IMG/VR virus record: IMGVR_UViG_3300020442_000005
Coordinates: 209,026-273,025 of that record
Direction: 5' to 3' (one strand)
Length of the DNA stretch: 64,000 nucleotides
The position numbers and the translations under genes were made by a program. Shown piece by piece: positions 14,430 through 55,655 of the stretch. Numbering within the stretch: position 1 is the stretch's first letter; the number at the start of each line of letters is the position of its first letter. A model generated the notes under the pieces. It saw only the letters and a program-made list of their open reading frames with translations, had not been told where the DNA came from and searched no databases.

Positions 14430-14430
14430 C

Positions 14431-39302: not shown

Positions 39303-39324
39303 GGATCGACTTGTTCTGTCGACG

Positions 39325-39348
39325 GGAGGTGCTTGCACCTCCTTTTTT
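39325..39348 (+). terminator. intrinsic terminator
   Basis: GGAGGTG-CTTG-CACCTCC-TTTTTT. Confidence 0.85.
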
Positions 39349-39420
39349 ATTATGGTTTTCATATACTTTTGTCCTCAAACTGTATAATTATACTTTGTTA
39401 ATGATGGGCTGAGATGTTTC

Positions 39421-40227
39421 ATGAAAAATTATGTTTTAAGAAAAATCATATCAAATTTGATTGTTGAGAACTTTAAGGTCAGAGGTTATATAAAGCCGGC
39501 TGAGAGTTTTCACTCCCTTGGCGAATTACAGGCCATGGCAAATTATGTTTTAAATCTTCAGCGTGCTGGCTATGACGCGAGGGATAAAAATTCTGGACTG
39601 TTATTGAATTTGCTCTACGAATATATGCCCCATATTGAAGACGATATAGAAAGATACGGTGCGAGATTTGACATAACAAATGTATATAACTTTTTAGAAG
39701 ATTTTGCAAACCATCGAGTCTGGTCCTTTGAAGACCAGTTTGGCCAATATTTCCCGGACATAGGTAGTTTAAGATTCTCGTATTTTTATTCTAGGGGAGA
39801 CATGGAACCATATGTGCTTCTGGATGAGAACTACACAAAGCAATTGTATGGATCCACAGATAATGTATACACTGTGAAACATTATACTACCGAAGCTGGA
39901 TTGCAAAACATAGAAGCATCAATCCAAACTGGAAAACCTTTTGATATATCATGCTTCACTGCCATGAAAAAGGAATACTTTGACAAGAAATCAAATATTT
40001 TATTGACGCTCAAAGGTAACGTGAGGGCTGGCTTTAGATCTGACGTAAAATCTTTTGCTGTCGACAACGGTAGGAGAGCATGCAACTTATTTAGACTCGG
40101 ATATCCGGGGGAAGAAACAAATATCTGCGAAAACTTAGATGGATGCGAAGACAATGCTACGTCTATTTGGAATGAATATATCGCGACACCATTAGAAATT
40201 ATCAAAGTAGAGGTATTAAACAGATGA
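39421..40227 (+). CDS. leader-bearing protein, possible ART-fold domain
   Basis: VLRKIISNLIVE leader; KHYT...ISCFT...WNEYI (H-S-E spacing). Confidence 0.6.
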   Translation: MKNYVLRKIISNLIVENFKVRGYIKPAESFHSLGELQAMANYVLNLQRAGYDARDKNSGLLLNLLYEYMPHIEDDIERYGARFDITNVYNFLEDFANHRVWSFEDQFGQYFPDIGSLRFSYFYSRGDMEPYVLLDENYTKQLYGSTDNVYTVKHYTTEAGLQNIEASIQTGKPFDISCFTAMKKEYFDKKSNILLTLKGNVRAGFRSDVKSFAVDNGRRACNLFRLGYPGEETNICENLDGCEDNATSIWNEYIATPLEIIKVEVLNR

Positions 40228-40580
40228 GAACATGGAAACCATTATTTTTTGAAAACAGTTCGCTGCCATTGATTCTTTCCGTAGTGGCGCCAATTGATAT
40301 CGGAGCTATCACACTTGGACCATTCGTATTTTCGCGTGGAGAAATGTCTGAGGTCACTAAAAATCATGAAGCAATCCATTGGCAGCAATATATAGAAACC
40401 GGGATTATTGGTTTTGTGTTGCTATACTTGCTTTACTGGGTGATTGGTTTGATAAAATACAGAGATGGACAAAAGGCATACTACCAGATACCCTTTGAAC
40501 AAGAGGCATATGAAAATCACGAGGATATGGAATATTGCCTAACCAGAAAAAGATATGAATGGTTCCGGAGAAGCATCTAA
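40224..40580 (+). CDS. small zincin-like HExxH membrane-associated protein
   Basis: AITLGPFVF...HEAIH..Q...AY..I.FE.EAY. Confidence 0.7.
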   Translation: MRTWKPLFFENSSLPLILSVVAPIDIGAITLGPFVFSRGEMSEVTKNHEAIHWQQYIETGIIGFVLLYLLYWVIGLIKYRDGQKAYYQIPFEQEAYENHEDMEYCLTRKRYEWFRRSI

Positions 40581-42157
40581 TGTGGCAGCTAAGAAAATAC
40601 ATACGGAATTTATTGTTTGAAAATTTATCAGACGCAACTATTCCACCTCCACCAAAGGAATCAATCGAAGAGTTAAGTTCGGTTATTAACCAGTACTACG
40701 ACCGTGTTAACGATGATTCTGTTCAGTACGATTTAGACGAAAGGATGGAATTGCTGTTTAACGAAGTGGTCGAAAAGAACAGTGGGGAAAACGTTGTTGA
40801 ATATGTCAAGGAACTAAAGACGCATCCACTGGAAATAGTGTCAGCACTCAAGGAATACTTTGCAAGAAAAAGACCCGAAGATGTCGCCGCAGATTTTGGT
40901 ATTGACTGGAAGAGTGATAGCGTTGATATGAAAACTATTAACAACAGTTATTCATATCCATCCGGTCACACTGCTCAATCTTATTATGTTGCACTTAAAC
41001 TATGTGATAGATATCCACAGCTTAGGAATGAGTTGTTTGAAGTAGCAGAAGCAGTTGCGCAATCTAGAATCGATCGTGGCGTACATTTTCCTTCTGATTT
41101 AGATGCTGGTCGAATTGTAGCAAATCAGCTATACCAACAAAATAAAACAAGCACTCCTGTAATTCTTGAGGGCATGGTAAGTCCAAACTCCGTATCAGGA
41201 AAATATGCAATATGGGCAGACATATCAGCGGATCAGGCTGGAAACCTCGACGAAGATTTGACGTCAATTGATTTTCTAATGTACGACTGGTCTGCCGCGG
41301 TTAAACACATTGAAGACGAGCTCAAAGAAGCCACCGCAGACGGTCGCCCAGGCGCACTAGAAATGGTCAGGGACTACGGGATTCTTGAAGCCATTACAGA
41401 TAGCGCTGTTGCATGCATGCGAGTGAGACCGTACGGCGATTACGAAGGATGCAATAGTGCTTGGGAAGTTATTAGATCAGCGGCAGATGGCGGTTTGGGT
41501 CCGACAATGTACGATTTAATTATGTCAATCGCTCCGAATGGTTTGTTTGCTGATAGATCAGAAGTTTCTCCGGCTGCTCAAAGTGTGTATCATTTTTATG
41601 CAAACAGACGAACCAGCGTAGATAAAGATTTTCTCGACCCGGGTGGATTCACAGATACAGAATATGATGACTGTAGGACCTACGGTCGCAGAGCTGATCC
41701 GTTACGTTATGCGACTAGAATGATGGCAATGGATTATTTTGATACCGAATGGCCAGACGAGCACACTCAGTTTAAGGACAATGCTGACCTTTCAGTTCTA
41801 GAACAAGCCGGCAGCGGAGATGCTGACACCTATTTCAGAGTTGTGTCAGAATGGATTATTGATAATGTGGATCCCGACTGGGATGAAGATACCTGGTACG
41901 AATGGAAAGTAGACGGTGAGCTTGATCTAATGCGTTATTGGAAGTCCGGCCCAGATCCAACCTTCGAAGATCCGGATTATTTAAATCTTTCGTACAATAC
42001 AAACTATGCGGTTTCTAGTTTCGAAGAGATGGAAGAAAACCATATGGCATTTATAAATGAAATATCAGATATGATACCAGGCTCAGAGGAAAGATTTTAT
42101 GAAGATCCCGAAGCCTTACATTTTGCTGTCAGAGATTTTTTCAGGGAGAGAGTTTGA
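40580..42157 (+). CDS. leader plus PAP2 phosphatase plus GNAT-like fusion
   Basis: MWQLRKYIRNLLFE; K..F.R.RP, SYPSGH, SR...GVHFPSD; then VILE; GLGPTMYD...GLFADR..VS.AA. Confidence 0.78.
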   Translation: MWQLRKYIRNLLFENLSDATIPPPPKESIEELSSVINQYYDRVNDDSVQYDLDERMELLFNEVVEKNSGENVVEYVKELKTHPLEIVSALKEYFARKRPEDVAADFGIDWKSDSVDMKTINNSYSYPSGHTAQSYYVALKLCDRYPQLRNELFEVAEAVAQSRIDRGVHFPSDLDAGRIVANQLYQQNKTSTPVILEGMVSPNSVSGKYAIWADISADQAGNLDEDLTSIDFLMYDWSAAVKHIEDELKEATADGRPGALEMVRDYGILEAITDSAVACMRVRPYGDYEGCNSAWEVIRSAADGGLGPTMYDLIMSIAPNGLFADRSEVSPAAQSVYHFYANRRTSVDKDFLDPGGFTDTEYDDCRTYGRRADPLRYATRMMAMDYFDTEWPDEHTQFKDNADLSVLEQAGSGDADTYFRVVSEWIIDNVDPDWDEDTWYEWKVDGELDLMRYWKSGPDPTFEDPDYLNLSYNTNYAVSSFEEMEENHMAFINEISDMIPGSEERFYEDPEALHFAVRDFFRERV

Positions 42158-43368
42158 TGGCAAATAAAAGAATACCAAGAAAGAAGGGTCAAAGAAGAAA
42201 CAGTAAAAAGCATTCTGATCTGTACACTGATGAAAACCCAAAAGGAACTATAAAAGGTTTGAAGTTTGCGACTGTCAAAGATGCAAAGGCTAGCGTGAGT
42301 AAAATTAAAAAGTCCTCGCGTTCACATAATCACAAGACACAAGCTGCAATTGCAATGGAACAACGAGCAAAAGCAGCCGGCAAGAAATCGGCTGCAGCAG
42401 TTTATAGAAAGTTTATTGAGCAACAAAAGAAGAAAACTAAAGCAAAAAACGAAACTACGAGGGCTGATCTGTTTTTGGATAGACCAACGTCTCATGTTGA
42501 CTACGACGAGTCTGTAAACGATCAAATAGCTGATTACATGGTCGATATGATGCTTATCAGAGAATACATACGGGACATTATTGTTGAGAATATGGTTTCT
42601 GTTGCAGGCGATACTATGATAACAAAGTTCAGGGAGCTTATCAATCGGTACGACGCACCAACGGGGTGGCAAGTCGAGGATCCACATTTCTTTGAGTCCG
42701 GTGGAGGAAATAGCTTGATTGGCCAAATACGTTTGCAAGGCACAAGGGAAGCACTTCCGAATCTTGACAGTGAGGTCGAAAAGCAAAAACTAAGCGCAAT
42801 ATACGCTCCATTTGCAAACCGCCGAGGTTGGAATCTTCTTCAAGTACGTGAGGAACCATTGCCATCTAGAAACCCAATTATTATGTACGAGTTAAAGTTT
42901 GATAAACAACCAAACACAAAAAATACAAACTATTTCATGTCAACTCAAGAACTACAAATCAAAGAGCAAGTGCTTCTTCATCTTACTAAGGAAAGTTATC
43001 TAAAGTCAATTCAGTCAGGCGGTTTTAAACCGGCAAGAAGCTCGTCAGACGGAATAAACTTTGGTAACGGCCGAGCCTATTTTGTATCGTGCTCTAGAAT
43101 GGATTGGGAAGATTCAAGAGATGCTGCAATTGGCTGGTTTTCTCGCGCGACAGAAACTGAGGGTTTTGCTGGAATCGACCCAACAGAAAAGCAAGTCTTG
43201 TTGGTAATTGATCCAGAGAAGATGAGGAACAACATACAATTTTACGTTGATACAGAATTTGGCTACGGTTCGGGTACAGTAGGTTATTCCGGAGTTTGGG
43301 GCGGGAAAGCAATTTATACCCCGGGGCACATACGGGCAACTGCAATTGAAGAGGTTATAGATTTATGA
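42157..43368 (+). CDS. basic N-terminal module plus internal leader plus putative ART-fold domain
   Basis: HSDLYTDENPKGTI module; internal LIREYIRDIIVE; LLHLT...I...GFKP...AYF...LLVID...IYT..HI. Confidence 0.65.
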   Translation: MANKRIPRKKGQRRNSKKHSDLYTDENPKGTIKGLKFATVKDAKASVSKIKKSSRSHNHKTQAAIAMEQRAKAAGKKSAAAVYRKFIEQQKKKTKAKNETTRADLFLDRPTSHVDYDESVNDQIADYMVDMMLIREYIRDIIVENMVSVAGDTMITKFRELINRYDAPTGWQVEDPHFFESGGGNSLIGQIRLQGTREALPNLDSEVEKQKLSAIYAPFANRRGWNLLQVREEPLPSRNPIIMYELKFDKQPNTKNTNYFMSTQELQIKEQVLLHLTKESYLKSIQSGGFKPARSSSDGINFGNGRAYFVSCSRMDWEDSRDAAIGWFSRATETEGFAGIDPTEKQVLLVIDPEKMRNNIQFYVDTEFGYGSGTVGYSGVWGGKAIYTPGHIRATAIEEVIDL

Positions 43369-44129
43369 GCACACTTAGAAAAACAATACGAAAAATATTA
43401 CTAGAGTCGGCTGTGTTGGCGGACGAACAGGCAATTGCCGTAATGAAAAAAGAAGATTTGATCTTCGTAGTTAGCATGTTAGCACCTTATGAAGGAACTA
43501 TAGCTCTTTTGCGAAGGAAATACTATGACATCGAAAACGACGATTACAACCTGTCCGATGCGGTTGGGCAGATTCAATTAGGTTCTGCGGGCGAAGAAAC
43601 AATGCAGGTTTCATTCTCTGAACTTTACCGTCAATTTCGAAACAAAGGTCTGGGCAAGCTATTATATAACGTTGCTTTGATGGCATGCACTGACGAAAAC
43701 GTTTGGCTTATGTCTGACAGGAACGATGTTTCATCCAAGGCTCAAAGGATTTGGCAAACTTGGAGCAAGCTTCCTGAATTATATGATATCGAGCAAATGG
43801 ATCATGACATGATAGGCGATGATTATTTTTTGACTGATGACGAAGATGATGATATGGTGCAAAACTCTTTCAACAATGACCAATGGCGTCCGGTATCCCC
43901 TCGAATCGAGCGCTTGCCTGACGAAGCGTACACAAGTCACGAGATGTCCGACGGTCGTTTTTTCACGGTTGAAAAAGATTCATGGTTCTTCTATGACCCA
44001 GATTACAAAAAACAGTATTTGGATTCTGGATTAACAAAAAGATTCCAGATGAAAGATGCGTACGCATTGTCAAGTTATCTAGAACAAGAAGGTTTACTTT
44101 ACTACTCGTACGAGGGACCTGCTTCATGA
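43365..44129 (+). CDS. leader plus GNAT-like acetyltransferase
   Basis: LRKTIRKILLE; FRNKGLGKLLY (motif A), LMSDR..VS..A..IW. Confidence 0.75.
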   Translation: MSTLRKTIRKILLESAVLADEQAIAVMKKEDLIFVVSMLAPYEGTIALLRRKYYDIENDDYNLSDAVGQIQLGSAGEETMQVSFSELYRQFRNKGLGKLLYNVALMACTDENVWLMSDRNDVSSKAQRIWQTWSKLPELYDIEQMDHDMIGDDYFLTDDEDDDMVQNSFNNDQWRPVSPRIERLPDEAYTSHEMSDGRFFTVEKDSWFFYDPDYKKQYLDSGLTKRFQMKDAYALSSYLEQEGLLYYSYEGPAS

Positions 44130-44740
44130 AAAATTTAAGACGATACATAAGGAGCACGCTTTTAACTGAGGTTTGTGCCGGTGCAACAGCGCAGATTCAG
44201 AAAGGTCTAGACGTTATTGAACAAAGAGACCTTAGAGTTGAAGTCTACATAGATGGAAACGATGGATATGATGTGATTCTAGTGTCAGGAGATGGGATAA
44301 GACGTGGACGGTTTGAGGTTACGACAGTCAAGAATTGCCCGGCTTATTCGACTATGTGGACCGAAGTTGATTGGAATCTAAAAAAAACCGGCGTTGGGGC
44401 TGTAATGTATGACATTGCAGTAGAGGTTGCTACAAAACTTGGCGGACACTTGGCGTGTGATAGAGGATCTGTGAGCGATTCCGCGAAGCGCATGTGGAGA
44501 TACTATACTTCATCGGATGATTACGAAGCATTCCAGTTAGACACACCAGACTCTACTTTTACGCCGATAAAAAGTGATGATTGTCAACAGTACATTTTTC
44601 ACAGAGAAACAAAATTATATAGTGGTGATGAAGGTTTCGAACAAGAATTTATGGCATCGCCTTTTACAAAAGCTTTTCGAAAAAAGAAAATAACGACAAT
44701 TCCATGTTTGGGTAATCGATACTCGGAGATTAGAGTATGA
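44126..44740 (+). CDS. leader plus GNAT-like acetyltransferase
   Basis: MKNLRRYIRSTLLTE; LKKTGVGAVMYD, LACDR.SVS..A...W. Confidence 0.72.
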   Translation: MKNLRRYIRSTLLTEVCAGATAQIQKGLDVIEQRDLRVEVYIDGNDGYDVILVSGDGIRRGRFEVTTVKNCPAYSTMWTEVDWNLKKTGVGAVMYDIAVEVATKLGGHLACDRGSVSDSAKRMWRYYTSSDDYEAFQLDTPDSTFTPIKSDDCQQYIFHRETKLYSGDEGFEQEFMASPFTKAFRKKKITTIPCLGNRYSEIRV

Positions 44741-45693
44741 AAAATTTAAGACAATACATAAGAAAGATTTTGATAGAGTCTGCCAATACAATACACCCAA
44801 AGATTAAAAGCATGCTTGACGAGCTAGAAGAAAATTATGGAGAGATTAACATCCAAAATTATCCCAACCAGGGGCAACTTGTTGAGATAAGGTTTTATGC
44901 TGGCGCTCAGCATGGTGATAGGTATTATAACACTGGTGTTGGCGGTGGATCTGATGCTGGCGCCGTGTTCGCAATGTATTCCAAGGATAGTGTTGTTCCA
45001 TCTATGTCTACGAAAATAGGCAATTGCAATGGTGCAGTGCCCATCGGTGGTGTAGATGGCAGTCAGATCGCAGTAGAATATGGCTTTGGTCCGTTGCTTT
45101 ATGATGTTCTTTTTGATGCGGCAGTTATGCTGAGTGGAGCTACTGGGCTGACTTGCGATTACTATTCCGTAAGCGACGAAGCATACAACGTTTGGAATTA
45201 TTATCTAAAAAACCGGCCAGATATGATTGCAAAACAAAAAGACTTGACACAATATCCTCGCACTCCCGATGAATCCGATGATTGTACCGGGCCTGGTGCC
45301 GGCGGAAGTTTTGGATATAGATCCGTTGCGAAGCGGTTCGGCTTTGATAAATCTTACGGTGTAAAAGCGTCAGACAAGGATGGCATGCCGGTCCGGACCG
45401 GAGAACTTACACCGGAGTTTATCGATCATTGGTTCGACCCGGAAAACCCTCTTTCGAAAACCTATCATAGGAAAAGCGGTGGCACACCGGTCATCGATTA
45501 CTTGCGATCAAATTTTCTTTTAAACCCTAAGGCTGCAAAAGTCATAGGGCAACCGTACTCTCCGGCTGAGCTAAAAAAAGTATGGGACAGAACCATAGGC
45601 ATAGAAGAGGCCGGATATCCAGATTACATGGCAAAAAAAGCAAAGCAATGGCAGCAAAACTTTGGAGCAAACGCCGAGGATCTATTAGCATGA
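44737..45693 (+). CDS. leader plus GNAT-like acetyltransferase
   Basis: MKNLRQYIRKILIE; GFGPLLYD, GLTCD..SVS.EA..VW. Confidence 0.7.
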   Translation: MKNLRQYIRKILIESANTIHPKIKSMLDELEENYGEINIQNYPNQGQLVEIRFYAGAQHGDRYYNTGVGGGSDAGAVFAMYSKDSVVPSMSTKIGNCNGAVPIGGVDGSQIAVEYGFGPLLYDVLFDAAVMLSGATGLTCDYYSVSDEAYNVWNYYLKNRPDMIAKQKDLTQYPRTPDESDDCTGPGAGGSFGYRSVAKRFGFDKSYGVKASDKDGMPVRTGELTPEFIDHWFDPENPLSKTYHRKSGGTPVIDYLRSNFLLNPKAAKVIGQPYSPAELKKVWDRTIGIEEAGYPDYMAKKAKQWQQNFGANAEDLLA

Positions 45694-46382
45694 ACCAATT
45701 GAGAAATTACATAAGGCAAGTTTTAGTTGAAATGGCTGCACCGCGACCAATTGACTTAGATGCTGTATATTATCATGGGACACCTACGAAGGCAAATGCC
45801 GAGGATATAATGATCAATGGTATAAAGGCACCTGATTTGTCGTCCAGAGAAGGCTATCTTCGACCAGTTGAAGGAAAAGTTTATCTCACAAGAGATTTGG
45901 CATACGCTCAAATCTATGCTTTGGGCGGTGACCTTGCAGGCAAAAATGTTCCTGATTCGTTTAAGGGATATGGACAATACGGGTATGTTTTTGTTGTCGA
46001 CGGCAAACAGCTAAAAGACATACAACCAGATGAAGACAGTGTTGGCGAATTGGTATATAACGAGGAAATAGATTGGCTTGATGAGTTAGCTAAGGATATC
46101 CTTAAATACGAAGAATACGATGACTTCGGGCAGGATCTTGGCTATAGAAACCTTTACGATGCGATAATTGGCGGCGAATACGACGCATGGGCTGCCGGAG
46201 GCAAAATTTTGTTAGATGAAATGTCTGATGATCAAAAACTTAATCTACTCGATTATGGTGCCCATGTTGCACACACAGGAAATCTCATACCAAAAGAAAC
46301 ATGGAGAATAGAAAGAAATAAAACACCCGAATTGCAGAAAGATGGTTCGAACTTTTTTGATCTAGCGGAGCGGATAAAGTGA
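45690..46382 (+). CDS. leader plus putative ADP-ribosyltransferase-fold protein
   Basis: MNQLRNYIRQVLVE; YYHGT...I...GI...VYLT...A..YA...PDED. Confidence 0.65.
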   Translation: MNQLRNYIRQVLVEMAAPRPIDLDAVYYHGTPTKANAEDIMINGIKAPDLSSREGYLRPVEGKVYLTRDLAYAQIYALGGDLAGKNVPDSFKGYGQYGYVFVVDGKQLKDIQPDEDSVGELVYNEEIDWLDELAKDILKYEEYDDFGQDLGYRNLYDAIIGGEYDAWAAGGKILLDEMSDDQKLNLLDYGAHVAHTGNLIPKETWRIERNKTPELQKDGSNFFDLAERIK

Positions 46383-47050
46383 AAGTGTTAAGGCAATACG
46401 TAAGACAGATACTTCTGACAGAAGCAATGAAAACAGAAACGGATCTACCCGACGATATCGGCGTTGAAATTTACGATTATAAAAAATCGGCTGCCTATAT
46501 TGGCTTTTGCGAAATTGATAAAAACGGAAATTACGTAAAAAGTTTATCTCCCGGACTTGAAGTAGCTGAAAATACAATTTTTAGTTCAGAACCAGAACCT
46601 TTACCCGAGAAGTTTCGGCATCCCTCCGGTATTTTTGGCACCGTTGGAATAGAACTATTGAGAGACTGGGGAGATCCGGACTGTGATGGCGCATGGATCA
46701 TAACTAACACGGTAGCGACACCAGGCTACGGTCCATTACTTTACGATGTTGCAATTGAATGGGCTACCATGCATGGCACCGGCCTTGTGTCTGATCGATA
46801 TAATGTTTCAGATGACGCGCGAAAAGTTTGGGCAAAGTATGCGGCACGGATTGATGTCGACAAGTTTCAATGTGACGACGAAAACAATGCATTAACACCT
46901 ATTGACTCTGATAACTTAGAGCAACATGCCGCAAGGAAAAACTTGCCAGGTGGTTCAGACTTTACCAGTAGTCCTTTGAGCAAACGCTATTCAAAGAGTC
47001 CCACAAGAATAAATAGCCTTAAGTCCCTCAGAAAACTGTTTTTTACATAA
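46379..47050 (+). CDS. leader plus GNAT-like acetyltransferase
   Basis: VLRQYVRQILLTE-AMKT; GYGPLLYDVAIEWA, GLVSDR..VS..A..VW. Confidence 0.72.
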   Translation: MKVLRQYVRQILLTEAMKTETDLPDDIGVEIYDYKKSAAYIGFCEIDKNGNYVKSLSPGLEVAENTIFSSEPEPLPEKFRHPSGIFGTVGIELLRDWGDPDCDGAWIITNTVATPGYGPLLYDVAIEWATMHGTGLVSDRYNVSDDARKVWAKYAARIDVDKFQCDDENNALTPIDSDNLEQHAARKNLPGGSDFTSSPLSKRYSKSPTRINSLKSLRKLFFT

Positions 47051-47063
47051 ATGAGATTACAAA

Positions 47064-47894
47064 ATGAAATACTTACAACAATATATAAGGCAGCTGCTCA
47101 TAGAAGTATACGAACTGGATGACCAGCAGAAAGTGAATAGGGATAGTCTAATCAGAATGGACTACGGTGGAAAAGAAATGGCACACGTTGCGGGTCTAGA
47201 CACGGCTGAAGAACAACGTGAAGATCGGGAACTTCTTCGAAGATATCAAGAAGGACTGCTGTCTACAAGCCATGGTAAAAAATTGATTAGAGCCTTTCGA
47301 AACGGTGACGTCACGATCTTGCATGATATCACATACGAGGGCGCCGCGGCAAGATCAGGTTTAGGAGGAACAAAAAATAAAAAAGCTTTAGCTTCTGACT
47401 GGATCCGTAAATATGGAAGATCTGGTAACGACACTCTCTCGACAATTGCTTGTTATCTTCCTCCTACCGAGTCACTTCCCGGCATAGAACTCCATGGTAA
47501 TTCCAAGTTTGTCATGTCTAACAGGGGAATGATCATGAAAGGTTATCCAGTATTTGTTGCAAAAGAAGATGTGATGTCACAGACGATCGGCGCATTAGAC
47601 GACAAAATGAAAGCACACTGGAAAACCTCCGGCATGCCAAAGAGGCCGGCAAAATCTAGAGTACGATTCGATGATTTTGGTGATATGGAAGGAATCCAGG
47701 GCTTGCGGCATCTTAAAAAGTTGCTTGTATCCAATGAAACTCTTCTAGATAATTGGACAATAATAGGCACATACATTGGTAGTAGTGGAAATTCTGACAA
47801 TGATGTACAAGCATGGATAGCAGATTCCCTTAGCCTTGGATTGCCCTGTAACGTATATAATCAATATGGCAACCTAACGAGGTATGAACCATGA
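47064..47894 (+). CDS. leader plus LDNW-family protein (putative ART fold)
   Basis: MKYLQQYIRQLLIE; ILH...LST...KGYPV...DVMSQT...NETLLDNW. Confidence 0.6.
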   Translation: MKYLQQYIRQLLIEVYELDDQQKVNRDSLIRMDYGGKEMAHVAGLDTAEEQREDRELLRRYQEGLLSTSHGKKLIRAFRNGDVTILHDITYEGAAARSGLGGTKNKKALASDWIRKYGRSGNDTLSTIACYLPPTESLPGIELHGNSKFVMSNRGMIMKGYPVFVAKEDVMSQTIGALDDKMKAHWKTSGMPKRPAKSRVRFDDFGDMEGIQGLRHLKKLLVSNETLLDNWTIIGTYIGSSGNSDNDVQAWIADSLSLGLPCNVYNQYGNLTRYEP

Positions 47895-48604
47895 AAAACT
47901 TAAGAGAATACATAAGACAAATACTGACTGAATCAGCATATAACAGACGAGACGCGTTCATCGCGGATTTATCCAGCGCAAATTTCGATCATCACTACCG
48001 TGAAAAAGGACAAGATGATGAGGCGTATAGACGGATGTCTGCCACTGGACGTCAACTAAAGAAGGCTTTTACTTCACACGCGGACAGGGATTGGCTGAAC
48101 AGTCTAGTATATGTCCACTGGACAAGAAAGAGACGAAAAGCACTTGCGTTTCTTGCCCCGGAAATAATTAAAGATGTAAGGGTTCAATCTTCACGCGATG
48201 AATTAAGCACAATGGTGTATAAACCTGGCGCTGTGGATGGAAGCGGTTATGATTTCGGCAAATACGGATTACTTATTCGTGGCTTTGTTACACTGTTAAG
48301 CAACGACATGAACTCCGTTGATAGTGGGTACACAGGAGGCTACGCACAAGCCGATCCACAAAGGGTAGCCTCGTCCGGTGCGAATAAGGGGATTGGAGTA
48401 GCAGTCGTTGACGACATAGCTTTAGATGAGAGCGAATGGGCTCCTGTCTTCGACGGAGGCGGTAACGAAGCATTCGTCGACAACTGGAATATTTATGGAG
48501 TGATTGTTCCAGACGAAGAACACGAAACGTTTTCTAGATTCCTAGAAAAAATCAAACAACAAACAGGAAGAGAATACTTATTACTAAAAGGGAGTGAACT
48601 CTGA
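47891..48604 (+). CDS. leader plus DNW-family protein (putative ART fold)
   Basis: MKNLREYIRQILTE; YVHW...DELST...NEAFVDNW. Confidence 0.6.
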   Translation: MKNLREYIRQILTESAYNRRDAFIADLSSANFDHHYREKGQDDEAYRRMSATGRQLKKAFTSHADRDWLNSLVYVHWTRKRRKALAFLAPEIIKDVRVQSSRDELSTMVYKPGAVDGSGYDFGKYGLLIRGFVTLLSNDMNSVDSGYTGGYAQADPQRVASSGANKGIGVAVVDDIALDESEWAPVFDGGGNEAFVDNWNIYGVIVPDEEHETFSRFLEKIKQQTGREYLLLKGSEL

Positions 48605-49035
48605 TGAAAAAATTACGTAAATTTATAAGAAAAACATTGCTCAACGAGAATCCAGGCGCAAAGTTTGGTTTAGACAAATGGACTTACGACTCGTATCTAG
48701 ATAAAATTGCAGATTTAATCATGAGCGGTAAACTTGGGCTGATGGAATCTGGTCTTATGATGGCAGAGACATATGGATTAATCGAGGATAAGCCGCCCTT
48801 TAAGGTCGTGAATGAAATTGAGGGTCCTTACAATTACGGATTGACTTTTATATCAAAGAACCTATTCCTTGTCGATGTGACCATACTGGATCCGGATCTT
48901 GGAAACCGGATTTGGGCAAAAAGAAATGCCAGGAATGCACCTATGATCCAAGAGCCACCAACACACGGACCAGCGGCACGTCAGCCTTTACAGTTTCCGC
49001 TGCGCATCATATTTGGATATCTGGAAAGAGAATAA
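48604..49035 (+). CDS. leader plus unknown domain
   Basis: MKKLRKFIRKTLLNE; KIADLI..G similar to 50366 gene. Confidence 0.68.
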   Translation: MKKLRKFIRKTLLNENPGAKFGLDKWTYDSYLDKIADLIMSGKLGLMESGLMMAETYGLIEDKPPFKVVNEIEGPYNYGLTFISKNLFLVDVTILDPDLGNRIWAKRNARNAPMIQEPPTHGPAARQPLQFPLRIIFGYLERE

Positions 49036-49038
49036 ACC

Positions 49039-49668
49039 ATGAAGTACTTGCGGCAATACATAAGAAAGATACTTTTGACGGAAGCGATGAAAACACCAGC
49101 AGATCTGCCGGATGACATCGTCGTTGTAATTGACGCCGATAGTAAAGAAGCATCAATTTATTATGGTCTGGCCAATAATCCTTCCGAGTACGCACCTGAG
49201 CTGAAACCTGAGCTCTATGGTCTCAGCTCAACCGACTACATGGGCGCGATAGACATATATTCACCAGCAAAGGGGCTTTTTTATCCTTGGTATGGGAATT
49301 GTGGCGACGCTTGGATGGTCGGCGGCTCTGCTGCTCAAGAAGGCTTCGGGCCTTTGCTCTATGATATAGCAATTGAGTGGGCTACACAAAATGGTGGTGG
49401 ACTTATTTCTGACAGAAGCAGCGTATCCCCCGATGCTCAGGACGTTTGGTCCTACTACGAACGAAACAGAGATGACGTAACAGCCCATCAGCTTGATGAC
49501 CTTGAGAATACTCTTACACCTGAAGATGAAGATAACTGCGATCAAAAGATTGGCAGGTCAACCGTATCGGGGATGTATGATACCTGGCAAGATAGTCAAT
49601 TAAGTAAGCGTTATACAAAGCCACCAACAACAATGCAAGCGCTTGGCAAAAAACTGGTGATCCTATGA
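49039..49668 (+). CDS. leader plus GNAT-like acetyltransferase
   Basis: MKYLRQYIRKILLTE-AMKTP; GFGPLLYDIAIEWATQNGGGLISDR. Confidence 0.72.
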   Translation: MKYLRQYIRKILLTEAMKTPADLPDDIVVVIDADSKEASIYYGLANNPSEYAPELKPELYGLSSTDYMGAIDIYSPAKGLFYPWYGNCGDAWMVGGSAAQEGFGPLLYDIAIEWATQNGGGLISDRSSVSPDAQDVWSYYERNRDDVTAHQLDDLENTLTPEDEDNCDQKIGRSTVSGMYDTWQDSQLSKRYTKPPTTMQALGKKLVIL

Positions 49669-50336
49669 AACAATTACGGCAATACATAAGAAAGACTCTT
49701 CTTACGGAAGCAATGAAGATGCCGGCTGATCTCACAGAGAACATGTATGTTCTTATCGAAGAGAATCGCGCAGGTGACTACTTTGAAGTTACGATTAATG
49801 ATGCAAAACCAGCACAAAGATACCCAAGATCTGGCATAATAGCGGAGCTGATGGTCGGAAAGGCAGAGGACCACAACGGCCTGAATTGTGATGGAGCTTG
49901 GGTAATCATGAGTTCCGAGGCAGAGCAAGGTTATGGTCCTCTAGTTTATGACATTGCAATGGAATACGTTGGAGACGATGGGCTAATGTGCGATCGATCC
50001 GATGTGTCCTTCGAAGCTGCAGATGTTTGGGATTTTTATCTTAATTCTAGACCCGACGTCAAAGCGGTGCAGCTTGATTTTCACGAAAAACCTTTCCTCA
50101 CTCCAGATAACATGAAAGATGATTGCGACGGCCAAGTTACCCTAGCCAGGCACGTTGATAGATGGTCAAGTATGGAAGCTGGATTCGACCCTGACGATCC
50201 GTACCATAATCACCAATGGATGGATCATTGGTCGACAAAGAAATATGTTAAGCAGGGGACACCTATAATGGACGAGCTTAGGATGCGAGGGGCAATCTAT
50301 TTCGACAGGGATGACACCGGTCACTACTACTTTTAA
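49665..50336 (+). CDS. leader plus GNAT-like acetyltransferase
   Basis: MKQLRQYIRKTLLTE; GYGPLVYDIAME, GLMCDR..VS..A..VW. Confidence 0.72.
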   Translation: MKQLRQYIRKTLLTEAMKMPADLTENMYVLIEENRAGDYFEVTINDAKPAQRYPRSGIIAELMVGKAEDHNGLNCDGAWVIMSSEAEQGYGPLVYDIAMEYVGDDGLMCDRSDVSFEAADVWDFYLNSRPDVKAVQLDFHEKPFLTPDNMKDDCDGQVTLARHVDRWSSMEAGFDPDDPYHNHQWMDHWSTKKYVKQGTPIMDELRMRGAIYFDRDDTGHYYF

Positions 50337-50365
50337 CTTAGTAAACAATGAGGCAAAAGACAGCA

Positions 50366-50857
50366 ATGAAACTACTAAGAGGGACAATCAGAAAAATACT
50401 TCTGCAAGAGATGGCTCAAAGACCACCCCATATCCCAACAACTGATCCTGAAATGGAAAGAAAAGTTGCGGATTTATTAACAGGCACCATACGAGACATA
50501 GCTCTGGGTGTAGAGTTTATGAAGACTATAGACCTTACTAAAGGCGTGAAAGCCCCCGATTCATACATAAAATTTGATATCGGCCGGAAGAAAATTAAAA
50601 TGACTGAATATCACTTCAAGGTCACCCAATCTTTTTACGATGCGATCGTGGACCAACTTAAAATCAAACGACGTAAAGCCAACCCAAAGTATCACCATCA
50701 TTTGATGATTGGCCGATGGACCGAGGGTGACGCTATAATTTCAATCTCGATACCGTATGACCTCATTGGACGCGACAAATACAGAGCGGTCATGTTACGG
50801 TCTGACGAACCATACGTCGAGCACTTGCACATTGAAATTAAAGAGCCGGCTGGGTAA
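50366..50857 (+). CDS. leader plus unknown domain
   Basis: MKLLRGTIRKILLQE; alternative start 50348. Confidence 0.68.
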   Translation: MKLLRGTIRKILLQEMAQRPPHIPTTDPEMERKVADLLTGTIRDIALGVEFMKTIDLTKGVKAPDSYIKFDIGRKKIKMTEYHFKVTQSFYDAIVDQLKIKRRKANPKYHHHLMIGRWTEGDAIISISIPYDLIGRDKYRAVMLRSDEPYVEHLHIEIKEPAG

Positions 50858-50871
50858 TTAGGAAAGCCACA

Positions 50872-51441
50872 ATGAAAAATTTACGACAATACATAAGACG
50901 GATAATAAGCGAAGCCTTAGATGGAAGTGGCAATCAGCAAGAAGCAGCGTACGCTGTAATATACACCGCTGGTTACCTCGACTCATCTGACAGAGGGCTT
51001 GGTCAGCTTATCAACAAAAATCCAAAGCTTGGCGAGCAGGGTGATAAGTGGATTCCGCTCGATGATGCCCTTGCTAACGTGCATTCTGCTTTAATTGCAG
51101 CGGCTTCTGCTATTAAAAGAGAAAATCCAGAACTCGACCTTTCGGAGGAGAGTAGTATTCTTCGAGAGGGTCAGGCTGCTGGTCAGGCAGACTTCCGCGA
51201 AAGCATATACAAGTACATTGAACAAGTAGAATCTCTTGTCAATAGAGAATCGCCTATGGGAATGAGTGCTGCTGAAGGCTTGAGAGTCTTTGGAGTCAAA
51301 ACTCTGTCTCCCGGGGTTACGCTGGCAGATACCGCAGTCGCAGACGTGAGAGATCTGATCTCTTTAATGGACGACGACAATGTTCTGAGCTGGCTGGACG
51401 AAGTTGAAACCATGAAACAGTACGGTGAGCTCAAACTATAA
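50872..51441 (+). CDS. leader plus unknown helical domain
   Basis: MKNLRQYIRRIISE. Confidence 0.7.
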   Translation: MKNLRQYIRRIISEALDGSGNQQEAAYAVIYTAGYLDSSDRGLGQLINKNPKLGEQGDKWIPLDDALANVHSALIAAASAIKRENPELDLSEESSILREGQAAGQADFRESIYKYIEQVESLVNRESPMGMSAAEGLRVFGVKTLSPGVTLADTAVADVRDLISLMDDDNVLSWLDEVETMKQYGELKL

Positions 51442-52055
51442 TGAAACATTTAAGAAATTACATAAGAAAGATTCTTCTAACTGAAGCAATGAAAACCCCA
51501 GCCATGCTACCAGATGACACTGTCATTGTAATAAAACCAGTACGTCATTATATAACAATTTATTACGGTAAAGCTGATAATCCTTCTAGTAAGAGTGGAA
51601 CTGATGGTGTTGGAATCCTTGGAACAATTTCTATATTTCCAACCGGTCGACGCTCACCGGACGGCTACTTTGTCGGACTTGGTAACTGCGATGGAGCTTG
51701 GATGGTCGGACTTGCAGCTGCATCCGACGGTTGGGGTCCGCTGTTATATGACGTCGCAATCGAATGGGCAACTCAAAACGGCGGAGGACTAATTTCCGAT
51801 CGTGGAGCTGTAAGTGTACCAGCTCAAAAAGTATGGTCCTACTACGAGCAAAACAGAGATGACGTGACAGCCCACCAGCTTGATGACCTCAATAATACTC
51901 TTACACCTGAGGAGGAAGATAACTGCGATCAATCGATTGGTAGGCGGACAATAACTGGTATGTATAATACCTGGCAAGACAGTCAATTAAGTAAGCGGTA
52001 TACAAAGCCGCCCACAACAATGAACGCATTAGGCGATAAACTAGTGATTTTATGA
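51441..52055 (+). CDS. leader plus GNAT-like acetyltransferase (close paralog of 49039)
   Basis: MKHLRNYIRKILLTE; C-terminal half nearly identical to 49039 gene. Confidence 0.72.
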   Translation: MKHLRNYIRKILLTEAMKTPAMLPDDTVIVIKPVRHYITIYYGKADNPSSKSGTDGVGILGTISIFPTGRRSPDGYFVGLGNCDGAWMVGLAAASDGWGPLLYDVAIEWATQNGGGLISDRGAVSVPAQKVWSYYEQNRDDVTAHQLDDLNNTLTPEEEDNCDQSIGRRTITGMYNTWQDSQLSKRYTKPPTTMNALGDKLVIL

Positions 52056-52774
52056 AGAACTTGCGGCAATACATAAGACAGACAATTCTCGAGAATAAGG
52101 AGGCATTTTTAGATGATCTCCTGTCAAATCCAAATTGGGATGAAGGTGCTCGCGATGCATTTAGTGACGAAACATACGATGACTATATTCAAAAATATCC
52201 TAAAGCCAGGAAACGCGGCAGATTAGTCAAGCAGGTGTGGGCTAAACACGTGGATAGAGAATATATTAATTCACTCATATACATTCACTGGGGCGGTATT
52301 TCAAGTATATACAATATTTTAAAATCGTCAATCGATGGCAGTCCAAAGAAGGATGAATTAGCATGCTCAGGTTATGAACCAGGAAAAGTCGCTGAAAGAA
52401 ACAGAGTCGGCAGTACAGGTTTGGTTATTGAAGGGCATGTCTCTTTGTTTGGAAACCACATGAACGACGTATTTTCAGGCGAGCTAGATCTAATTAAAAA
52501 GTTTAATCCAGAAATGGGTCCAACATCAGGCTACAACAGAGGTACTCTTTCGGCAATTGCCGACACGTTTATCTTGGACAGAGAATCTTTTATCCATCGA
52601 AACAATCCGGATCAAAACCGTACTGAGGCTTTTTTAGACAATTGGAAGATCAAAGCATTAGTGTTCGAGCCTGATAGTGATCTCTGGCGAGGTCAGGCGC
52701 AAAAGGATTTGGTAAATTCAATCCGCACAGAATTCAAGTTAGACATCCCCATCCTTAGACCTAGAGATCTGTAA
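52052..52774 (+). CDS. leader plus DNW-family protein (putative ART fold; paralog of 47891)
   Basis: MKNLRQYIRQTILE; H.DRE..NSL.Y.HW...DELAC...TEAFLDNW. Confidence 0.6.
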   Translation: MKNLRQYIRQTILENKEAFLDDLLSNPNWDEGARDAFSDETYDDYIQKYPKARKRGRLVKQVWAKHVDREYINSLIYIHWGGISSIYNILKSSIDGSPKKDELACSGYEPGKVAERNRVGSTGLVIEGHVSLFGNHMNDVFSGELDLIKKFNPEMGPTSGYNRGTLSAIADTFILDRESFIHRNNPDQNRTEAFLDNWKIKALVFEPDSDLWRGQAQKDLVNSIRTEFKLDIPILRPRDL

Positions 52775-53439
52775 TGAAACATTTGCGACAATACATAAGA
52801 GGAATACTTCTAACTGAAGGTATGAAAACAGAGGCCGATCTGCCTGACGGCATTGGTATTATAATCAGGCAAAGAGCCTGGGAAGACAATCCGTCTAATA
52901 TTGTAATATCGTACTACAACTTGAATACAGAATATCCTCTGGAAACCGACAGAGAAAACATCATCCCATGGGGTATGGTCACCCTCGGCTTAGTATATCC
53001 ATATGAGCCGGCATACAACGGGCAAGATGAACGTTTCAATCTCCCGGAAGATACTAGTAATCTTACATGCGGAAATGCTTTTCAGATTTTCACCACCGAT
53101 GCTGCTGATGGATGGGGTCCCTTACTTTATGACGTCGCAATCGAATGGGCTACAATGAATGGTAACGGACTAATATCTGATCGATCTGGCGTGTCCGAGG
53201 ATGCTCAAGCCGTTTGGGAATACTACATGTACAATAGACCGGACGTCCAAAAGTTCCAATGCGATGATCACTTAAACACCTTAACTGCCACGTTAGATGA
53301 TAACGTCGATATGAATATACCCATGGCTGACGGCCGCTCATATTTTCCGGAAGATTTAGAGAATGATCCCCTAGGAAAAAGATACACGAAGGAACCGACA
53401 CGGATAAGACAATTAGGCGATAAACTGGTGATCCGATGA
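52774..53439 (+). CDS. leader plus GNAT-like acetyltransferase
   Basis: MKHLRQYIRGILLTE; GWGPLLYDVAIEWA, GLISDR..VS..A..VW. Confidence 0.72.
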   Translation: MKHLRQYIRGILLTEGMKTEADLPDGIGIIIRQRAWEDNPSNIVISYYNLNTEYPLETDRENIIPWGMVTLGLVYPYEPAYNGQDERFNLPEDTSNLTCGNAFQIFTTDAADGWGPLLYDVAIEWATMNGNGLISDRSGVSEDAQAVWEYYMYNRPDVQKFQCDDHLNTLTATLDDNVDMNIPMADGRSYFPEDLENDPLGKRYTKEPTRIRQLGDKLVIR

Positions 53440-53807
53440 AACACTTGCGGCAATACATAAGATTATTATTGGAAAATAACGACGAGATGATAGAGCACAT
53501 TAATGGAATCATCGAAGATTATAAGCTTAGTGATATAGGTCCGGACCACTGGAACCAACTTGACGATATGATCGAAGATATCTTCCCAGGCACAAAACCG
53601 CCAAACATGAAAGTCTGGTCTGCCGCCCATCCATTGAATGGTGAGGTTTTCGAATCGTATGTGACACAAGAAGAAGCCTTGACCGTTCACCTTAGAGATG
53701 CAAACATTGTGCCGGCCGATAATGATGGCACCGAAGTTCAAACGCCAGAGATTCTAGATTGGGATCCAACTGGATATGCTTACATTATGAGTTGGGAAAT
53801 CAAATGA
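53436..53807 (+). CDS. leader plus acidic unknown domain
   Basis: MKHLRQYIRLLLE. Confidence 0.7.
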   Translation: MKHLRQYIRLLLENNDEMIEHINGIIEDYKLSDIGPDHWNQLDDMIEDIFPGTKPPNMKVWSAAHPLNGEVFESYVTQEEALTVHLRDANIVPADNDGTEVQTPEILDWDPTGYAYIMSWEIK

Positions 53808-54637
53808 AAAACTTGCGGCAATACATAAGAAAGATACTATCAGAAGTGTACGAGCTCACACCAGAAGAAGACAAGACTCGGCGAGAAGATTTTGCTTATC
53901 AATCTGCAGCTAGACGCTCCTTAGGCCTTCAAACATCGGCCGAGATTATAGAAGACAGGGAAGAATTGCAGAATTACCAGGCGCGACTTAAAAGCTCGAC
54001 GGAAGGTAAAGAACTAATCCGAAGATTTATGAAAGGAACAGACGTCACTATCATGCACAGCATAAACTATTCCGGATATGCTGCTTTAAGAGGTTATAAA
54101 TCCTTCGATAGAGTCGATAAAAGTATGCCTTTCCAAAGATGGATTGGGCAACACGGCCGAAAGGGAAAAGACGTGCTCTCATGTGTAGCATCCGACCAAC
54201 CGCTCGGTATGGACTTCTTAATCGGAAATGATAATCCAGCTGCAGCTCACGGATTCGGCTTCATTATGAAAGGATACCCGGTCTACATTTCCGAAACAGA
54301 CGTAATGTCTCAAACACTAGGAGCTATCCCGCCAGGTTTAGTAAAGCACCAAGAACAATCCGGTGTGGCAAAACGACCCGGTGACACTTCCGCAGGAATA
54401 ATCGAATTGGATTTCGGCTGGGCTGGAGAAGTGCTGCTCGACAACTGGACGATCATCGGCACGTACATGGATATAAGCGGCAACAATGATTTAGCTGTAT
54501 TTGAGACACTTGCTCGGGATTCGATCAGCATGTTCAAACCCGTCCCTTTCTATGTTTACGATGACGGATATTTTGTCGGCAAAATAACAGATAAAGATTC
54601 TATGTTTGAGGTAAGAGAAAAACTATTCGGATTTTAA
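53804..54637 (+). CDS. leader plus LDNW-family protein (putative ART fold; paralog of 47064)
   Basis: MKNLRQYIRKILSE-VYEL; IMH...LSC...KGYPV...DVMSQT...GEVLLDNW. Confidence 0.6.
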   Translation: MKNLRQYIRKILSEVYELTPEEDKTRREDFAYQSAARRSLGLQTSAEIIEDREELQNYQARLKSSTEGKELIRRFMKGTDVTIMHSINYSGYAALRGYKSFDRVDKSMPFQRWIGQHGRKGKDVLSCVASDQPLGMDFLIGNDNPAAAHGFGFIMKGYPVYISETDVMSQTLGAIPPGLVKHQEQSGVAKRPGDTSAGIIELDFGWAGEVLLDNWTIIGTYMDISGNNDLAVFETLARDSISMFKPVPFYVYDDGYFVGKITDKDSMFEVREKLFGF

Positions 54638-54663
54638 AACCAAAAAAACCGCGGCTAAACATC

Positions 54664-55622: not shown

Positions 55623-55655
55623 GTAACTTTCAATCCTAGTAAAAGCGGAGTTCAT

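Follow-up and report, generated by a model that had tools for sequence, protein, structure and literature searches.

A leader-tagged gene array of a marine T4-like phage with at least five predicted ADP-ribosyltransferase-fold proteins

What do the proteins encoded by a compact gene array of a marine giant phage do, and how might they reach the host? The window analysed here, a stretch of 64,000 nucleotides, is the end of the 273-kb genome of a marine T4-like myovirus. From the letters alone, seven genes of this array (Table 1) had been proposed to encode NAD+-consuming ADP-ribosyltransferases (ARTs) analogous to T4 Alt/Mod and interleaved with GNATs. All seven candidate ORFs were confirmed on the + strand at their proposed starts, and each contains the motifs on which the proposal was built. 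Sequence searches of Pfam and the PDB gave nothing in favour of labelling the interleaved paralogues as GNATs. The explanation that we consider probable is that of a tagged cargo array, with at least five ART-fold enzymes that would be packaged, injected and host-modifying.

Table 1. Positions in the window of the array, its upstream elements and the ART candidates with their motifs.
Feature	Position	Strand	Remark
Putative cargo array, 21 genes	39421..54637	+	co-oriented, tightly packed; all seven ART candidates inside
Terminator-like hairpin then T-run	39324..39343	+	strong, intrinsic type, directly upstream of array
-10-like element TGTATAAT	~39381-39388		sigma-70-like
39421, 268 aa	39421..40227	+	first array gene; C-terminal half with invariant motifs
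39421 KHYT	39877-39888	+	
39421 ISC	39946-39954	+	
39421 WNE	40168-40176	+	
42157, 403 aa	42157..43368	+	modular protein; ATG start at 42157
42157 internal leader MLIREYIRDIIVEN	42550-42591	+	
42157 C-terminal H-Y-E domain	42940-43368	+	
42157 LHLT	42976-42987	+	
42157 AYF	43075-43083	+	
42157 DTE	43249-43257	+	
45690, 230 aa	45690..46382	+	predicted H-Y type ART-fold protein, PARP/DarT/Tpt1-like
45690 YHGT	45771-45782	+	
45690 VYLT	45879-45890	+	
45690 YA	45903-45908	+	
45690 PDED, invariant	46026-46037	+	residues 113-116; candidate third active-site residue
47064, 276 aa	47064..47894	+	DNW subfamily A
47064 H87	47322-47324	+	
47064 S126 (LST)	47439-47441	+	
47064 SGMPKR	47628-47645	+	
47064 E225	47736-47738	+	
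47064 DNW	47748-47756	+	residues 229-231
47891, 237 aa	47891..48604	+	DNW subfamily B, modelled; predicted ART fold
47891 H76	48116-48118	+	strand β1; candidate active-site His
47891 S106 (LST)	48206-48208	+	strand β2; candidate active-site residue
47891 N138-D139	48302-48307	+	candidate active-site residues
47891 SGANK	48374-48388	+	candidate active-site loop
47891 E193	48467-48469	+	start of β5; candidate active-site residue
47891 DNW	48479-48487	+	residues 197-199; DNW turn, candidate active-site residues
52052, 240 aa	52052..52774	+	DNW subfamily B paralogue; IHW, ELAC, SGYNR, EAFLDNW
53804, 277 aa	53804..54637	+	DNW subfamily A paralogue; MHS, VLSC, SGVAK, EVLLDNW

Four of the candidates form one real family with two subfamilies, and their likeness is far beyond chance. 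Within subfamily A, 47064 and 53804 are 40% identical (E 4e-50); within subfamily B, 47891 and 52052 are 36% identical (E 8e-27). The profiles of the two subfamilies align over 195 columns through DNW with a probability of 97.9% (E 5e-13, hhalign). The four-member family of the sequence-only reading is thus confirmed, together with most of the motifs attributed to it: the His, L(S/A), Gly and ExxxDNW elements (G126..G131 for the Gly motif of 47891) are present in all four proteins, but 52052 has 'HM' in place of D(V/M) and Ala in place of the conserved Ser. In metagenomes the family amounts to no fewer than 603 clusters (50% identity; representatives at E<=1e-3), and it carries no name in Pfam, NCBIfam or PHROG. 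Among 209 non-redundant members, conservation reaches 100% for G131, 99% for E193, 98% for S162/G163 and W199, 97% for N198, and 96% for D197 and S106. Similarly, in 41 subfamily-A relatives H87 is present in 100% and S126, E225 and DNW in 97%. Across the whole family the His is found in only 83%, because the alignments of the two subfamilies are offset: sequence aligners set the subfamily A His six columns ahead of that of subfamily B. We infer that H87 of subfamily A is equivalent to H76 of subfamily B.

ART active sites combine a His or Arg on β1, a Ser or Tyr on β2 and a Glu, Gln or Asp at the start of β5. Structure prediction and Foldseek searches, which had been suggested as a check of the fold, were performed on 47891 and 45690, the other three DNW members being tied in by homology; both models matched (almost) exclusively ARTs. 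With the AF2 model of 47891 (pLDDT 94.1, pTM 0.88), the best Foldseek match in the PDB was CteC (probability 0.96-0.97), followed by CopC, SopF, OspC3, ExoA, DarT and Tpt1. A VIA wide scan of 48,161 chains, independent of Foldseek, gave seven ARTs as its top seven matches (Z 6.2-4.3), and just 32 chains reached Z>=2, about 26 of them ARTs. The top seven Swiss-Prot structural matches were OspC/CopC, matches among AFDB clusters included halovibrin, DarT and an SPP1-gp7 head-protein fusion, and the best Atlas match was AbiGi, a known ART family (PMC12522546). The DNW family is thus predicted to possess the split β-sheet of the ART fold and a residue at each of the β1, β2 and β5 positions of the superfamily, H76 lying in strand 73-78 of the model, S106 in strand 105-110 and E193 opening strand 193-206. 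Model residues 70-237 align with CteC chain positions 59-267, and these ranges, rather than a superposition, would place H76, S106 and E193 opposite R65, S97 and E220 of CteC (PMC10810742).

CteC, SopF, OspC and CopC, the top structural matches of DNW, have their conserved residues in the same β1, β2, β5 order, and the DNW N/D pair may correspond to CteC D134/N139. However, DNW has His for Arg on β1, shares only 10-14% identity with these proteins and lacks both the ubiquitin-binding insertion and the calmodulin-binding region; moreover, they are secreted bacterial effectors, whereas the DNW proteins belong to phages. A His-Ser-Glu combination lies outside the three classical ART triads. No sequence match to ARTs was obtained for the DNW family, nor for 39421, in Pfam, NCBIfam, PHROGs or a PDB profile search, and the structure scores of DNW are moderate (Z ~6, TM ~0.4) and may reflect merely a common arrangement.

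The fifth protein, 45690, is of a different type. It has a GI motif between YHGT and VYLT, and a helical insertion spans roughly residues 115-190. We found 194 homologues; the motifs, H29 and Y65 included, are invariant in 46 homologues. With the AF2 model (pLDDT 93.8), all 50 of the 50 Foldseek matches listed were ARTs, Tpt1 was the best VIA match (Z 6.8), with 23% identity across 93 residues, the VIA wide search returned ARTs nearly throughout, and the Atlas match was a viral DarT/PARP cluster (TM 0.59/0.58). The annotation of a homologue from phage Tunturi_5 reads ART toxin. The model points to an ART fold of the H-Y-[EDQ] clade, in which β1 bears the His and β2 the Tyr, and to viral PARP/DarT-like proteins and Tpt1/KptA as the closest structures.

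The two remaining candidates are the 42157 C-terminus and 39421. The start of the gene 42154/42157 is likely the ATG at 42157, as in the homologue P0148, and its product begins with a basic module, followed by an internal leader and a middle domain, and ends in an H-Y-E domain that also has GFKP. H276, Y309 and E368 are invariant in four sequences (this protein and three homologues), with an H-to-Y spacing of 33. The sole meaningful PDB sequence match of the C-terminal profile is P. horikoshii Tpt1, at a borderline E of 0.03 and in two collinear segments; alignment with the 45690 family gave an E of 0.013 with a probability of 3% (hhalign), and the ESM Atlas yielded a poor model (pTM 0.33). 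This C-terminus is probably a sixth ART candidate, of a Tpt1-like H-Y-E type. Like 45690, it shares with Tpt1/KptA a YHGT-type β1 and the next helix; the N-terminal lobe and the R-H-R-R tetrad of Tpt1/KptA were found in neither. With Tyr instead of His as the β2 residue, both would be of the H-Y rather than the H-H-h type. As for 39421, its KHYT, IS(C/A/S)FT and WNE motifs are conserved across a family of eight, and in P0262, P0178 and L020 a domain of this type stands ahead of a DNW domain in one fused protein. No significant sequence link to the PDB or to the other ART-candidate families was found, and a language-model search offered one weak lead, a viral PARP cluster ranked 66th; the H/S/NE motifs make 39421 a possible seventh candidate. 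Hence, of the seven ART folds initially proposed, five (the four DNW proteins and 45690) are confidently predicted with model support, and the 42157 C-terminus is borderline.

It could be argued that this ART likeness is an artefact of modelling or searching, or that the proteins are ART-like scaffolds without catalytic activity that act as binders or inhibitors, like T4 IPI. Indeed, all scores are moderate (E ~1e-2 to 4e-3, Z<=6.8, TM<=0.6), sequence-level matches are lacking, and the triad is unusual, with its Ser missing from 52052. We nonetheless hold this to be very unlikely, as both models have a pLDDT of about 94, and four or five libraries and two aligners led almost exclusively to ARTs. 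In addition, the β1, β2 and β5 residues are the most conserved in families several hundred strong, and this concentration at the canonical positions suggests an active site under selection.

A different matter is what such ART folds would act upon. The fold may be retained for something other than protein modification, the proteins acting on nucleic-acid ends or bases, through Tpt1/KptA-like 2'-phosphate removal or RNA-end capping or through DarT-like DNA ADP-ribosylation, or else just destroying NAD+ or NAD-derived immune signals. The proximity of 45690 to Tpt1/KptA and DarT, the Tpt1 match of the 42157 C-terminus and the resemblance of the DNW model to DarT (Z 5.8) and Tpt1 (Z 5.3) in VIA are in line with this. 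The H-H-h and H-Y-[EDQ] clades moreover typically have a His on β1 (PMC9503650), and H-H-h substrates are RNA and small molecules (PMC9503650). The fusion partners of some DNW relatives also include the RNA-repair phosphatase HAD_SAK_1, a Zeta/AAA_33 kinase and a poly(A)/CCA polymerase head domain; however, the leader described below sits between the fused domains, so these cargos may simply be strung together and not work as pairs. As the best DNW matches, CteC, SopF and OspC, are protein modifiers and the N-terminal RNA-binding lobe of Tpt1 is missing, we consider this alternative rather unlikely. DarT, AbiGi and DUF4433 are structural matches of both models, but sequence-level matches to them are lacking, and no DarG/macro antitoxin partner was found. 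The 82%-complete genome showed no gene for NadV (NAD+ salvage), Macro or NADAR, which counts against the NAD+-using reading that we prefer.

The proposal that the array encodes packaged cargo rests on a shared leader. On 20 of the 21 consecutive genes we identified a leader of 12-15 residues (consensus MKNLRQYIRKILLTE) that ends in L/I-x-E, the [LI]-x-E falling within residues 11-15; 42157 carries its leader internally, not at the N-terminus. The leaders are amphipathic, the proteins behind them are otherwise unrelated, and the motif is absent from the rest of the 273-kb genome. Across these unrelated folds the best-conserved leader positions are the Glu, kept in 91-97% of the DNW family, and the L/I two residues earlier. 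In the AF2 models of 47891 and 45690 the leader helix has a lower pLDDT than the domain, and multi-domain relatives have further copies of the leader between their domains. The same genome encodes a gp23-type capsid protein (Gp23, E 1e-63) and a gp21-family protease (Peptidase_S77, E 1.3e-27), so that N-terminal leaders ending in L/I-x-E and this type of protease occur in one phage. In T4, gp21 cleaves after L/I-X-E (PMC9026906), and the internal proteins, like Alt, are targeted and processed and later ejected (PMC9026906; PMC3012670). ARTs are common in jumbo myoviruses and often head-packaged (PMC9503650). By analogy with the T4 internal proteins and Alt, the leaders and the gp21 homologue fit T4-style capsid targeting.

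The leader might instead be no capsid address, and the array might produce cytoplasmic host-takeover proteins after infection, its conserved 5' ends being kept for recombination or duplication, for translation initiation, or as an oligomerisation or membrane helix. The hairpin and T-run directly 5' of the array suggest a separate transcription unit; the sole promoter-like element at the array is sigma-70-like, with no T4-late-promoter motif, and the head gene cluster is about 115 kb away. In its residues the leader does not resemble the T4 capsid-targeting sequence, and T4 ModA/ModB are ARTs that are not packaged. Yet the conservation of the Glu and the L/I at -2 ahead of unrelated folds, the presence of a gp21-family protease and the leaders between domains of polyprotein-like relatives, which suit cleavage sites better than translation signals, make this explanation rather unlikely in our view.

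With regard to T4 itself, the likeness lies in the virion system (gp21 protease, gp23 capsid), in the several paralogous ARTs per phage and in a presumed host takeover upon injection. Alt is an R-S-E ART of the Alt/VIP2 family, head-packaged and gp21-processed. Its ART fold comes with an N-terminal propeptide that closes on a gp21-type site, as is predicted for the array proteins, but the latter have His on β1 instead of the R-S-E triad, and the five to seven ART candidates all lie within one tagged array. Alt/Mod proteins are absent from the Swiss-Prot structural matches and no ADPrib_exo_Tox Pfam match was found here; the analogy to Alt as a packaged ART is reasonable in view of the leaders and the gp21/gp23 genes, but no specific sequence or structural kinship with Alt/Mod was found. 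T4 IPI-III also have a short N-terminal tag ending in L/I-x-E on unrelated proteins in a hypervariable locus (PMC3012670, PMC9026906). The array differs by its tag sequence, by its size (~20 genes, enzyme-sized products) and by tags that also lie between domains in relatives. Finally, myoviruses have head-packaged ARTs that are polyvalent or fused to MuF or the portal (Iyer et al. 2022, PMC9503650); the concept is shared, namely capsid delivery of several ARTs per jumbo phage, and one DNW match in AFDB is the SPP1-gp7 head-protein fusion; here, by contrast, delivery would depend on a short cleavable tag on separate genes. Since head-packaged ARTs of giant myoviruses were already known, what is new is the family and this putative variant of delivery.

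Altogether, the ART fold and the shared tag suggest that the ART-fold proteins are probably NAD+-using enzymes that are carried in the capsid and, once injected, change the host. We can propose the following scheme for this locus (39.4-54.6 kb), which would be a hyper-expanded version of the 'internal protein' type. The leader would act like the T4 capsid-targeting sequence and bring the protein into the prohead scaffold core, the gp21-type protease would cut it off after the Glu, and the mature protein would leave the capsid with the DNA. After injection, the ART cargos would use host NAD+ to ADP-ribosylate host protein or nucleic acid, and the divergent paralogues would hit separate targets, like T4 Alt, ModA and ModB. 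Much more tentatively, DNW may represent an undescribed, very large His-Ser-Glu ART clade (SG-x-NK, E-x3-DNW), and the leader may serve a clade of marine T4-like phages of 270-290 kb as a capsid address and protease site that is universal and portable. If so, one virion would inject a mix of about 20 enzymes, comprising five to seven ARTs, a PAP2 phosphatase and eight paralogues of another unnamed family, and the multi-enzyme polyproteins of relatives would be cut into separate effectors within the prohead.

Our results provide a predicted fold, and therefore a testable chemistry, for a family of more than 600 clusters (50% identity) that is unnamed in curated libraries. They suggest that abundant marine giant phages may inject several NAD+-dependent modifying enzymes at once, and the many divergent ART paralogues point to multiple host targets, possibly including defence systems. 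The shared tag would serve as a sequence handle to list the injected proteome of uncultured T4-like phages, and it could double as a packaging tag for engineering.

The four DNW proteins of the window, named after their E-x3-DNW motif, form one family, as the sequence-only reading had claimed, and each motif listed in that reading was found at the gene to which it had been attributed. Within subfamily A, 47064 and 53804 (genes are named by their start coordinates) share 40% identity (E 4e-50); within subfamily B, 47891 and 52052 share 36% (E 8e-27). For each pair a profile was made that included metagenomic and viral relatives; hhalign aligned the two over 195 columns up to DNW (probability 97.9%, E 5e-13). 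An exhaustive HMMER search at the 50% identity level recovered 603 cluster representatives at E≤1e-3 and 411 at E≤1e-10. Among 209 non-redundant members, conservation is 100% for G131, 99% for E193, 98% for W199, S162 and G163, 97% for N198, and 96% for D197, S106 and G126; 52052 carries an Ala at the Ser position. The His is conserved in 100% of 41 relatives of subfamily A. In sequence alignments it stands six columns away from that of subfamily B, an offset that may reflect the loss of a few residues ahead of strand β1 in subfamily A.

None of the 114 DNW members scanned matched any Pfam family. More broadly, Pfam, PHROG and NCBIfam scans of these members and of the seven candidates returned no ADP-ribosyltransferase (ART) family, and the DNW profile retrieved nothing from PDB sequences but designed TIM barrels and noise from dynein. 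Some DNW domains are fused to kinase, HAD or nucleotidyltransferase domains; this was considered as a functional clue and down-weighted, because the leader, a 12-15 residue tag shared by 20 of the 21 array genes, separates the domains.

An ART fold had been proposed for seven cargos. Structure searches support this for the DNW family, through 47891, and for 45690. In a sequence profile search, the C-terminus of 42154 gave only a borderline match to Tpt1. The AlphaFold2 model of 47891, made from a 114-sequence alignment, has a mean pLDDT of 94.1 and a pTM of 0.88. When it was compared with the PDB by Foldseek, the best match was the ubiquitin ADP-ribosyltransferase CteC (E 4e-3, probability 0.96-0.97, TM ~0.4), followed by CopC, SopF, OspC3, exotoxin A, DarT and Tpt1. 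In a scan that did not use Foldseek, only 32 chains among 48,161 PDB representatives reached Z≥2; about 26 of them are ARTs, including the top seven (SopF 6.2, CteC 6.1, DarT 5.8, Tpt1 5.3 and more DarTs). Further matches, among AFDB clusters, are halovibrin, proteins with a DarT domain and an SPP1-gp7 head-morphogenesis fusion, and the first seven Swiss-Prot matches are OspC/CopC ADP-riboxanases. The top ESM Atlas match is AbiGi, listed as a known ART family in a recent survey (PMC12522546). Single scores are moderate; since independent libraries and aligners give almost exclusively ARTs, the assignment of the DNW family to the ART fold from the predicted structure is convincing.

In the model of 47891, H76 falls within strand 73-78 and S106 within strand 105-110, and strand 193-206 begins with E193; these are the canonical β1, β2 and β5 positions of the predicted fold. 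The catalytic R-S-E residues of CteC are R65, S97 and E220 (PMC10810742). From the range of the match (model 70-237 to chain 59-267), we infer that H76, S106 and E193 stand opposite these three residues. The predicted His-Ser-Glu layout of the DNW family thus combines traits of two clades, H-Y-[EDQ] and R-S-E.

The model of 45690 reaches a pLDDT of 93.8, and all 50 PDB matches listed by Foldseek are ARTs. VIA-align gave Tpt1 (Z 6.8; 23% identity, 93 residues), pertussis toxin S1 (6.4) and DarT1 (5.9), and an independent wide scan returned ARTs nearly throughout. An Atlas shape search led to a viral 'DarT/PARP' cluster (TM 0.59/0.58 over 171 residues), and next to DUF4433, DUF3990, PTS_2-RNA, DUF952 and ADPrib_exo_Tox. 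Its 194 homologues, some from viral contigs of up to ~600 kb, share invariant H29, G30, Y65, T67, Y72 and PDED (113-116); one of them, from Tunturiibacter phage Tunturi_5 and 28% identical, bears the annotation ADP-ribosyltransferase toxin. By its predicted structure, 45690 belongs to the H-Y type of ARTs and contains a helical insertion. When its profile was searched against PDB sequences, designed-repeat matches were spurious and Tpt1 came at E 0.23 only.

The product of gene 42154 begins with a basic N-terminal module, after which come an internal leader, a middle domain and, at the C-terminus, a domain of 140 residues. In this last domain, H276, Y309 and E368 do not vary, and H and Y stand 33 residues apart, which fits the spacing typical of H-Y-E enzymes. 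Only three PDB sequences came up at E≤10 with the profile of this domain; two of them are P. horikoshii Tpt1 (E 0.03), aligned in two collinear segments covering β1 with its helix and a later strand. This sequence match is suggestive but borderline for a Tpt1-like domain. The ESM Atlas model of 42157-43368 is poor (pTM 0.33). The basic module also recurs ahead of a DNW domain in the protein P0223, and behaves as a portable unit sited upstream of the tag. Among the ESM Atlas neighbours of 42154 are viral proteins of several domains that join PAP2, CTP_transf_like, NTP_transf_2 and Zeta-toxin kinase domains.

For 39421, eight relatives were found, in which the KHYT, IS-x-FT and WNE motifs do not vary, and three further phage proteins have a similar domain fused N-terminal to a DNW domain. 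Neither the family nor its C-terminal half matched PDB sequences in profile searches. No sequence or profile comparison was significant, and 39421 is a putative ART on its conserved motifs. In ESM Atlas language-model searches with 39421 and the C-terminal part of 42154, the sole lead was PARP/DarT at rank 66. Since profile-profile comparisons between the candidate families gave nothing significant beyond the shared leader, the seven candidates are not one sequence family.

All these genes belong to an array of 21 tightly spaced genes, in which the stop codon of one gene often overlaps the start codon of the next. A strong hairpin that resembles a terminator stands ahead of the array. The T4 late-promoter motif TATAAATA shows no enrichment, and the array contains no copy of it. 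The leader (consensus MKNLRQYIRKILLTE, with [LI]-x-E at residues 11-15) is found in 20 of the 21 genes and nowhere else in the genome. Its Glu is conserved at 91-97% and, together with the L/I at -2, is the most conserved part of the leader across unrelated folds. In the AlphaFold2 models of 47891 and 45690, the leader helix has lower confidence than the domains.

Coordinates of features in the window
Feature	Position	Strand	Description
MetH region	10893-15759		full-length B12-dependent methionine synthase (1178 aa, five Pfam domains), adjoining S-adenosylhomocysteine hydrolase
Methyltransferase	35129-36064	-	SAM-dependent
Hairpin	39,324-39,343		terminator-like, upstream of array
Array	39,421-54,637	+	21 genes
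Leaderless gene	40224-40580	+	sole one in array; 118 aa, hydrophobic segments, probably membrane-spanning
PAP2 cargo	40580-42157	+	leader, 525 aa; PAP2 phosphatase domain (E 1e-11), then long acidic C-terminal region
Basic module	42157-42528	+	~100 aa (…HSDLYTDENPKGTIKGLKFATVKDA…) before internal leader of 42154; phrog_727 match, E 9.5e-5
Eight paralogues	43365-53439	+	leader-bearing; starts 43365, 44126, 44737, 46379, 49039, 49665, 51441, 52774
Region directly after array	54638-56500		GC skew turns negative, GC content rises; short ORFs only, on both strands
Promoter match	55374-55401		sigma-70-like, best of the region 54638-56500

The eight paralogues, which the sequence-only reading had called GNATs, have a common core G-x-GPLLYDVAIEWA...SDR..VS..A..VW, and the family matched neither Pfam nor PDB sequences. 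Related phages carry polyprotein-like genes (P0178, 823 aa; L020:5-2665, 886 aa; P0237, P0180 and P0244) with two to four cargo domains in series, of the YH(S/Y)T, 39421-like and DNW types, and a leader-like L-R-x-Y-I-R-x-L-L-x-E segment ahead of each. Such repetition of the leader between domains is what polyprotein cleavage sites would predict.

The window is the final 64 kb of a 273,025-bp IMG/VR viral contig (completeness 82%, CheckV). The phage is a T4-like jumbo myovirus, since its genes include those for a prohead protease of the T4 gp21 family (Peptidase_S77, E 1.3e-27) and a major capsid protein of the gp23 family (E 1e-63). Near-identical sequence is present in marine metagenomes from at least 10 studies, and Tara Oceans is the source of many homologues; cultured phages gave no match to the array region (megablast) or to 47891 (tblastn). 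No NadV (NAD+ salvage), Macro or NADAR gene was found in the 82%-complete genome. MetH and S-adenosylhomocysteine hydrolase place two steps of the methyl (SAM) cycle on the phage.

A survey of viral NAD+/ADP-ribose systems found ARTs in >40% of jumbo phages, enriched in myoviruses, often head-packaged and numbering up to ten or more per genome (PMC9503650); the occurrence of several ARTs in a giant myovirus therefore has precedents. Two things appear to be new: the large, unnamed DNW family with its H-S-E, SG-x-NK and E-x3-DNW signature, which may equal an ART family named in that survey outside Pfam, and the presence of five to seven ART-fold proteins, part of them candidates, in one ~20-gene array with a common T4-like address tag.

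In T4, gp21 cleaves after L/I-X-E, the internal proteins have only a short N-terminal capsid-targeting sequence in common, and the ART Alt goes into the head, is processed by gp21 and reaches the host by ejection (PMC9026906; PMC3012670). The likeness to T4 Alt lies in the proposed packaging and trimming of an ART; Alt/Mod are absent from the Swiss-Prot structural matches of 47891. From these T4 precedents, the conservation of the leader Glu and L/I and the inter-domain leaders, we infer by analogy that the array encodes capsid-targeted, protease-trimmed and injected cargo with putative NAD+-using ART members. The leader would carry the products to the capsid and be removed by the phage protease before injection, and the injected ART-fold members may then use host NAD+ to modify host macromolecules.
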